DNA of 62,974 nucleotides, the filler included, from Choristocarpus tenellus KU-1152 (taxonomy: Eukaryota; Protista; Phaeophyceae): NCBI GenBank assembly GCA_964200185.2. It is 9 parts of 9 records of this genome, joined end to end, with 100 filler letters (N's around TTAATTAATTAA, not from the genome) between each part and the next. Parts side by side here need not be neighbours in the genome. Positions count along the whole stretch, not along the records: positions 49,137 to 51,975 come from CAXNAD020024300.1; 8 more parts are not named here. One strand, 5' to 3'. The notes under the pieces are model-generated. The model searched no databases and was not told the DNA's origin. It saw only the letters and a program-made list of their open reading frames with translations. Positions 50,612 through 51,562 of this stretch are shown one piece after another; within the stretch, counting starts at the first letter, position 1; every line of letters starts with the position of its first letter. The position numbers and the translations under genes were made by a program.

Positions 50612-51562
50612 TCACAAGTTTGTCGTGTTATCTAGGGCGCGGAAAACGACCACTTCAAACTCCTCCCCTTTGTTTACTCTCAAGTTTCGCACAATAGGGT
50701 GGCCTTCACACCGTAAGAAAACTGTTGCTTTCTTGTGGTCTATATGATCTTTTCCCCAAATCTGAACCATTCGATGCCCTTCCTCTTGCTTTTGTGTTAC
50801 CCATACAACCAATGTCCTTCGAACGCGTAACATGCATACTTGACATTCACCAATTTTAATTTCATGGCTGAAAACACGAGTTCCCGAATCTGTCAAATTT
50901 CCTTCCACATTTACCTCAGCACCTGGAAAAAAACTAGCCCTAATACAAGTTGAGGATTGCGACTCAGAGCTATCCCTATATAAGACAGTGACGTCTTGCT
51001 TCTCACCATCTTTCTCAAAGCCATCGTTGACAAAACGGAACCCATATTTAATGCTCTCAAGATCCAATTTTTCAATGTCAACAAGCGCAACACCATCGTT
51101 CTCGTTGATAGTCCTCGCAACACTGAATTTAGTGAAGTGAGGTACCAACACTTGAAGAAAAAAGGTCTTCTCCACTTGCACAACTTCTGACGCACATGGA
51201 CCCCACTCCTTACCACCCTCTTCTTGGACAAACACTCCAAATTCCTCCTTCAGGTACTTCTTGTAAGCTTCTTTATCCACAACATAATTTTCATCATCTG
51301 ATCCAGCTTTCATTCTCGCTTCATCTCCAACAGGAAACCGCAGCCGAAGCGGTGAGGAAAATTCGAACCCTTCGCTTGCTAAACAGGTTACCACAGGATG
51401 CAGCAAGTAACGTTTCCCGTCCAAAGTAGCTGTACTTGATGACATGGTCACAAGTCCAGGGATGCCATACCTCATTGACGTAAACAGTTCAAAGTCAGGC
51501 GACCCCAAACTCTTATGTGGTCCTAGTTGCCATGCCACCACTTTCCCAGTGACACCTGCCAT
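50612..51562 (-). CDS. 316-aa uninterrupted ORF with a ZU5-like domain ending in HFT plus a beta-rich C-terminal domain; may be the terminal exon of a longer gene
   Basis: LLHPVVTC..EG.EF..PL.L.FP...W...QVLVPHFTKF matches the ZU5 pattern; longest ORF in the window with coding-like composition. Confidence 0.7.
   Translation of the reverse strand: MAGVTGKVVAWQLGPHKSLGSPDFELFTSMRYGIPGLVTMSSSTATLDGKRYLLHPVVTCLASEGFEFSSPLRLRFPVGDEARMKAGSDDENYVVDKEAYKKYLKEEFGVFVQEEGGKEWGPCASEVVQVEKTFFLQVLVPHFTKFSVARTINENDGVALVDIEKLDLESIKYGFRFVNDGFEKDGEKQDVTVLYRDSSESQSSTCIRASFFPGAEVNVEGNLTDSGTRVFSHEIKIGECQVCMLRVRRTLVVWVTQKQEEGHRMVQIWGKDHIDHKKATVFLRCEGHPIVRNLRVNKGEEFEVVVFRALDNTTNL

Follow-up and report, generated by a model that had tools for sequence, protein, structure and literature searches.

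An open reading frame (ORF) of 316 codons from the brown alga Choristocarpus tenellus probably encodes a ZU5-superfamily module with a predicted self-cleavage site and appears to form the last exon of a larger gene, with the order leucine-rich repeat (LRR)-ZU5-UPA-like, that belongs to a brown-algal family; we place the probability of this reading at about 60%. The window analysed is a stretch of 62,974 nucleotides in which parts of nine records of the C. tenellus KU-1152 genome are joined, and window coordinates refer to this whole stretch. The record of interest, CAXNAD020024300.1 (49137-51975), contains a single long ORF on the minus strand (50612..51562), with an ATG start and a stop after codon 316. 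Reading the sequence confirmed that this ORF and the tripeptide H142-F143-T144 (51139-51131) lie where the original prediction had placed them; the motif is encoded by CAC (51139-51137), TTC (51136-51134) and ACT (51133-51131) within QVLVPHFTKF. As a whole, that prediction of a candidate self-cleaving ZU5-UPA-like module was supported by favourable computational checks, cleavage and an immune role being the parts that we infer.

A word-based search retrieved seven relatives, two of them C. tenellus paralogs with 75-84% identity and the others, including Ectocarpus proteins, with 30-36% identity. Because the frame is conserved in both the close paralogs and the brown-algal relatives, it is not a chance ORF. 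Profile searching of 1.84 billion cluster representatives yielded only 31 relatives at E <= 0.001, and all those carrying a species name are brown algal (Choristocarpus, Ectocarpus sp. 4, Ectocarpus sp. 13, E. fasciculatus, Scytosiphon promiscuus and Nemacystus decipiens); judged from these sequences, the family therefore appears to be a small and divergent one that, within the sampling available, is restricted to brown algae. Below, related proteins are labelled P00nn and related genomic loci L00n, L001 being the contig of a Choristocarpus paralog. A more distant subfamily comprises P0029 (from N. decipiens), P0035 and P0036, in which the motif reads HFT or HFS. Our literature search found no paper linking ZU5 to Ectocarpus, brown algae or Phaeophyceae, and the papers that mention both ZU5 and stramenopiles draw no link between them.

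On its own, the window protein matched no Pfam or NCBIfam family and gave no meaningful match among PDB sequences. An AlphaFold run with 8 sequences was poor (predicted local distance difference test, pLDDT, 54), and Foldseek found no match to that model at E <= 0.001. It was superseded by a run with 37 sequences (pLDDT 81.3, predicted template modelling score 0.76), which folds the N-terminal half into a β-sandwich with a helical acidic insert and the remainder into a second sandwich (from residue ~162) and a final helix (Table 1). An exhaustive comparison of this model with 48,161 PDB representatives, independent of Foldseek, ranked ankyrin ZU5 domains highest: ankyrin-B (6m3q_E, score 8.9, root-mean-square deviation 3.4 over 116 residues), erythroid ankyrin (3f59_A, 8.6, model residues 7..151) and a ZU5A-ZU5B pair (3ud1_A, 8.1). 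GAIN domains also matched (CD97, BAI3 and CELSR1 at 7.8, 6.5 and 6.5), as did the FIIND domains of CARD8 (6.6) and of rat and human NLRP1 (6.5 and 6.3) and UNC5b (5.5). Foldseek applied to the better model likewise returned AnkB ZU5-ZU5-UPA (probability 0.95-0.98), rat NLRP1 and CARD8.

Profile searches pointed to the same superfamily. Pfam ZU5 (PF00791) matched 6 of the 37 relatives weakly (best E 1e-4) and was the only family matched by more than one member; P0023 scored 21.8 bits (curated cut-off, 21), P0020 20.3 and P0029 16.7, while the window protein gave no PF00791 match even at E 10. A profile of 26 family sequences matched only the ZO-1 ZU5 domain in the PDB (2kxs, E 0.002; 2kxr, E 0.27), with the same core strands aligned. 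An 8-sequence profile had recovered only chance antibody matches, and with the deeper profile A3 the ZO-1 match weakened to E 0.033, probably because fragments dilute that profile. Residues conserved family-wide beyond the motif, P56, V58, C60, F68, P71-L72, L74-R75-F76 and W120, lie in core strands. The original prediction had recognised a ZU5 pattern in the window protein and proposed fold prediction as a check; the pattern has no Pfam match in this protein, but it is borne out by the predicted fold and by the weak profile matches in its relatives. Since fold, motif and profile matches agree, the protein very probably belongs to the ZU5 superfamily.

That superfamily also takes in the GPS and Nup98 autopeptidases (PMC3482391), so whether the domain is of ZU5, GAIN or Nup98 type is a question of subfamily and not of mechanism. 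A GAIN/GPS-type or Nup98-type autoproteolytic domain in place of ZU5 proper seems very unlikely: the sequence signals point to ZU5 alone, the protein has neither a helical GAIN subdomain A nor a Cys-rich GPS, and no seven-transmembrane region follows. Nup98-type domains were absent from the top 50 structural matches and the Pfam Nucleoporin2 family gave no match, which leaves the HF/S-type motif as the only common feature (here and below, a slash in a site denotes the scissile bond or an exon boundary).

The candidate cleavage motif is conserved across the family. Among the sequences that cover the site in the 37-sequence alignment, position 142 is His in 26/30 and position 143 Phe in 25/30, whereas position 144, the +1 residue, is occupied by Cys (14), Thr (11) or Ser (3) and by nothing else (28/28). 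The few members that deviate at H or F carry YFT, HSC, HWS or HVC. The expected conservation of HF[ST] among homologs therefore holds in a form widened to HF[S/T/C], with a nucleophilic +1 residue throughout. HF/C is found in most Ectocarpus-type members; to our knowledge, there is no documented ZU5 or FIIND case of the thioester variant that a Cys nucleophile would represent. In the AlphaFold model HFT occupies the turn between strands 133-142 and 145-151, so that the turn leading into the final ZU5 strand of the window protein holds an [H/S]-F-nucleophile motif. Structural alignments to human NLRP1 (6x6c_E, 1091..1212) and GPR56 (5kvm_A, 210..382), chains that appear to be N-terminal cleavage products, both stop at model residue 143, which places F143 opposite the last listed residue of each. 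In NLRP1, residue 1212 is P1, because S1213 is the essential nucleophile; in GPR56 the P1 residue is L382. By analogy, F143/T144 is the putative autoproteolytic site.

Conservation of the motif could instead reflect a structural role in a ZU5-fold protein that does not cleave and serves as a binding module, as in ankyrin, ZO-1 and UNC5B. The best structural matches are indeed ankyrin ZU5 domains, which do not cleave, the sole PDB sequence match is the likewise non-cleaving ZU5 of ZO-1, and self-cleavage of the algal module is a prediction from sequence and model. However, Cys, Thr and Ser have in common only the capacity to act as acyl-shift nucleophiles, and a purely structural role of position 144 is not expected given that it switches among exactly these three residues beside a nearly invariant H-F. 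The motif also lies structurally opposite the ends of the NLRP1 and GPR56 chains, and HF/S is a cleavage motif proven by experiment in PIDD and Nup98. We therefore regard a non-cleaving protein as unlikely and favor an autoproteolytic module.

Two relatives, P0008 (Scytosiphon, 662 residues) and P0010 (Ectocarpus sp. 13, 705 residues), are fusions with LRRs (Pfam LRR_1/LRR_8), in line with the suggestion that homologs might carry fused N-terminal domains. Neither these nor the other long relatives have a Roc or COR match in Pfam, and NACHT was found in no relative. P0029 carries two RanBP2-type zinc fingers and has no LRR, while P0020, P0024 and P0035 have long low-complexity N-termini; because the distant subfamily P0029/P0035/P0036 carries zinc fingers (P0029) or low-complexity sequence in place of LRRs, the module appears to have been combined with varied N-terminal parts. 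The related loci are intron-rich. In the P0008 gene (L002), exons of ~72-78 nt encoding one LRR each are followed by the entire module as a single terminal exon, and direct translation of the P0010 gene (L005) gave the same layout. The string atggcag/gt, reported earlier at the start codon as an acceptor-like site that might imply upstream exons, is present in the window (51562-51554). The terminal-exon acceptors of the two fusion genes, cctacag/ATTTC (L002) and ttcgcag/ATTTC (L005), fall at the identical codon and phase as the window's atggcag/GTGTC.

Upstream of the paralog, 2.4 kb away on the same strand, L001 contains a 72-nt LRR exon (3522-3593) that is bounded by the acceptor aaacag/ and the donor /gtacgt, encodes DIPPSLGGLSELRVLDLHSNQLS and has both boundaries phase-compatible with the cag/GT acceptor. 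Exons of this 72-nt type have been described for the brown-algal ROCO candidate immune receptors (PMC11378527; PMC3341825). A strict scan (AG, 72 nt, GT, an open frame in fitting phase and an LRR signature) gave 5 matches in L003 upstream of P0003 and 1 in L001, all real LRR exons; 8 matches in L002 comprise 7 real exons and one match overlapping a real exon, and 7 in L005 comprise 6 real exons and a match at 719-790 that is unlike an LRR unit. On the reverse strands of all four loci there were 0 matches and 0 real LRR exons. Within the 413 bp between the window ORF and the contig edge no LRR exon was found. At the L003 locus (2892-7005 and 10001-10999), which belongs to a 1.5-Mb contig of an ENA assembly, five perfect 72-nt LRR exons precede the P0003 ORF, and the contig also holds a second family member, P0011; the ENA gene calls for this locus are prokaryote-style ORFs that missed the spliced gene.

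An LRR gene probably ends with the window ORF as its terminal exon; the exons further upstream, presumably of the 72-nt single-LRR type, most likely lie beyond the contig edge. The alternative, that the window copy is a standalone 316-residue protein starting at the ATG at 51562, lacks LRRs and retains cag/GT as a relic of partial duplication, is a less likely but reasonable proposal: an in-frame ATG stands exactly at the ORF start, a Met occupies the same position in P0006, P0008 and P0010, the Choristocarpus paralogs P0001 and P0002 are single-exon products in the NCBI annotation, the 5.9 kb upstream of the paralog hold one LRR exon only, and the duplication shared with L001 stops ~344 bp upstream of the ATG. 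Against this stand the agreement of acceptor position and phase with two annotated LRR-fusion genes, the pyrimidine-rich tract before cag and the occurrence of same-strand upstream LRR exons in 4/4 loci with enough upstream sequence. On the terminal-exon reading, many family members of ~330 residues (those from ENA/Logan ORF calls, perhaps also a few of NCBI's single-exon models) are likewise probably terminal exons of larger LRR genes. The NCBI model of P0001 adds 17 codons ahead of the conserved ATG (L001 5981-6031); this extension is probably not coding, because the matching window sequence holds a TAA stop.

Substitution rates in the duplicated copies differ along the protein. The flanks of the segment shared with L001 are 91.8% (3') and 84.4% (5') identical. 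Nei-Gojobori estimates for the three pairs among the three Choristocarpus copies gave a nonsynonymous-to-synonymous rate ratio (dN/dS) of 0.4-0.5 for the ZU5 half in two of three pairs, the third having one synonymous change, and of 1.4-3.3 for the C-terminal half. The two halves show nonsynonymous rates that are ~4-fold apart (p 1e-8 to 1e-4). For synonymous rates, two of the three pairs show no difference between the halves (p = 1 and 0.35); the pair of the window copy and P0002 does (p = 0.024), but its N-terminal half has a single synonymous change. These rates fit a cleavage domain under constraint coupled to a C-terminal fragment that is either diversifying or relaxed. Positive selection was rejected as unproven, since dN/dS > 1 is significant in one pair of three (p 0.011, uncorrected).

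An alternative is that the Choristocarpus copies are decaying, on fragmented and repeat-rich contigs, as recently formed and now functionless pseudogenes of an LRR-ZU5 gene. This would account for the overall dN/dS of 1.2-1.6, for a C-terminal dN (0.13-0.20) close to flank divergence, for the location of all three copies on short contigs and for the rearranged polyketide synthase relic 0.7 kb downstream of the ORF. Yet the open frame is preserved in each of the three copies (292-339 codons) at ~10% divergence, and HFT together with all family-invariant residues is intact. With the constraint on the ZU5 half and the contrast between the halves, which synonymous rates mirror in one pair only, this makes decay quite improbable.

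Two leads point to UPA for the C-terminal half. An ESM-Atlas feature search with residues 155-316 returned UPA, UPA_2 and UPA-FIIND clusters in 5 of the 6 listed rows, at scores of 0.76-0.83 that lie below the tool's trust line, and a shape search returned UNC5B, UNC5D and UNC5CL (ZU5 and UPA with or without Death), with 181-196 residues aligned at a template modelling (TM) score of ~0.40. These are leads only, and the odds that the second sandwich is UPA-like are about even; of the ZU5-UPA-like module proposed earlier, the ZU5 fold and a second β-sandwich were recovered in the model, whereas its UPA identity is still carried by such leads. Pfam detected no Death or CARD domain in any of the 37 members, and in the model the window protein ends after one 14-residue helix, with no death fold.

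Known sites offer a template for the chemistry: PIDD1 (HF/S), UNC5CL, NLRP1/CARD8 (SF/S) and GPS domains (HL/T). An N-to-O or N-to-S acyl shift has been described for PIDD, Nup98, inteins and Hedgehog (PMC3210808). By analogy, the hydroxyl of Thr144 would attack the Phe143 carbonyl in an N-to-O acyl shift, assisted by His142 and by the strain that the buried Phe places on the backbone, and hydrolysis of the ester would release an N-terminal piece ending at F143 (15.9 kDa in the window copy) and a C-terminal piece. The size computed for the latter, 19.8 kDa for 173 residues, agrees with the ~19 kDa anticipated earlier for this predicted product. As in FIIND and GAIN, strand 145-151 of the C-terminal piece would keep its place in the ZU5 sandwich, which should hold the two pieces together non-covalently until removal or unfolding of the N-terminal part. 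The second, probably UPA-like, sandwich and the terminal helix would belong to the C-terminal piece, which diverges fast between paralogs, and the whole gene would follow the order LRR-ZU5-UPA-like, as in PIDD1/NLRP1, without a death-fold domain.

The features of the ORF and its surroundings are collected in Table 1. Within the acidic insert, which is longer in P0020, P0023 and P0024, G87-S88-D89 is invariant in the close subfamily according to the alignment.

Table 1. Features of the module ORF and its flanks, in window coordinates
Feature	Position	Strand	Basis and remarks
ORF	50612..51562	-	316 codons + stop; probably terminal exon of larger gene; in-frame ATG 51562-51560
ZU5-type β-sandwich domain, residues 1-152	51107..51562	-	includes strand 145-151 beyond the predicted scissile bond
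H142-F143-T144, predicted autoproteolytic site, scissile bond F143/T144	51131..51139	-	motif counts, structural alignments
Acidic helical insert, residues 81-107, within the ZU5 sandwich, family-specific	51242..51322	-	model helices 81-86 and 97-107; alignment
Predicted C-terminal cleavage product, residues 144-316 (173 residues, 19.8 kDa)	50615..51133	-	inferred from motif
Second β-sandwich domain, residues 162-287, possibly UPA-like	50702..51079	-	fast-evolving between paralogs
C-terminal helix, residues 302-315	50618..50659	-	DSSP on AlphaFold model
Candidate 3' splice site	51556..51590	-	pyrimidine-rich tract + cag 51558-51556; exon start 51555, phase 1
Segment duplicated in the Choristocarpus genome	49928..51906		gene + both flanks; 88.6% identical to L001 5707-7688
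Enoyl-reductase fragment	49646-49837	-	CurK enoyl-reductase E 5e-14; preceded by ...VLIHTAAGGVGQAAVQIA and in-frame TAA 49838-49840
Dehydratase fragment	49446-49727	+	CurK/CurF dehydratase E 0.002

Downstream of the ORF, the AT-rich part of the window at 49446-49930 (GC ~0.29-0.32) contains two type-I polyketide synthase fragments that meet head-on near 49661. These may represent the rearranged remains of a pseudogene, inserted foreign DNA or a chimeric assembly. Homology with L001 ends at 49928, and L001 lacks this part; on their 3' sides the duplicated copies therefore have different neighbours. Upstream, 51840-51935 contains low-complexity runs, namely (GGGGT)-like repeats and a short (CA)n with a poly-C run; most of the G-rich repeat is missing from L001.

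Brown algae evolved complex multicellularity independently. In animals, self-cleaving ZU5-UPA modules act as central switches in innate immunity and cell death, as in the inflammasomes of NLRP1 and CARD8 and in the PIDDosome; bacterial toxins contain related autopeptidases. Most of what is known of immunity in brown algae concerns candidate LRR-ROCO and NB-ARC-TPR genes, and PMC12396294 describes local cell death as a conserved resistance response. Since the LRR-ZU5-(UPA-like) order resembles that of PIDD1 and NLRP1, the most economical guess, albeit a tentative one, is a role in sensing or cell death. In a more speculative scheme, to which we give little weight, brown algae would own PIDD1/NLRP1-like sensors that combine a shuffled-exon LRR array with a self-cleaving ZU5-UPA-like module, and the fast-diversifying C-terminal fragment, kept inactive by its docked strand, would be freed on pathogen-driven degradation or unfolding of the N-terminal part to act as a cell-death or defence effector, one of a new kind given the lack of a death-fold domain. 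An LRR-ZU5 family with a conserved cleavage motif provides a concrete molecular candidate that is open to mutagenesis, and a separate instance in which to ask whether "functional degradation" has arisen more than once as a mode of sensing.

Among characterized systems, PIDD1 (LRDD), an LRR-ZU5-ZU5-UPA-death domain protein that cleaves itself at HF/S446 and HF/S588, offers the closest parallel in layout: an H-F-nucleophile motif closes the ZU5 sandwich, a β-rich domain follows the site and algal relatives have N-terminal LRRs before ZU5 in the same order. Unlike PIDD1, the algal module has one ZU5, usually a Thr or Cys nucleophile and no death domain; its LRRs are of the brown-algal type with 72-nt exons, HMMER finds no sequence similarity, and its cleavage is predicted. 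The NLRP1/CARD8 FIIND (ZU5-UPA, SF/S) differs in that the algal motif has HF, no CARD follows the module, NACHT is absent and UPA is only possible. UNC5CL and UNC5A-D (ZU5-UPA-death domain) provided the best two-domain shape matches in the ESM Atlas, covering model residues 1-311, but the TM score is just ~0.40 and the algal module lacks both the death domain and the transmembrane receptor part. The ZU5 domains of ankyrin and ZO-1 have no HF[S/T/C] and do not self-cleave, whereas the algal domain additionally has its acidic helical insert of 27 residues. What appears new is the occurrence of an established autoproteolytic fold and motif in another lineage, combined with a Thr/Cys nucleophile, an insert of its own, no death fold and a shuffled-exon LRR fusion. 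The brown-algal LRR-ROCO and NB-ARC-TPR candidate receptors, in whose descriptions (PMC11378527, PMC3341825) a combination of LRR with a ZU5-type module is not mentioned, share the LRR array built from 72-nt, same-phase, one-repeat exons and the character of a multi-copy, lineage-specific family with fast-evolving parts; in the family described here, this array is joined to a ZU5-type module where those receptors have ROC-COR or NB-ARC.
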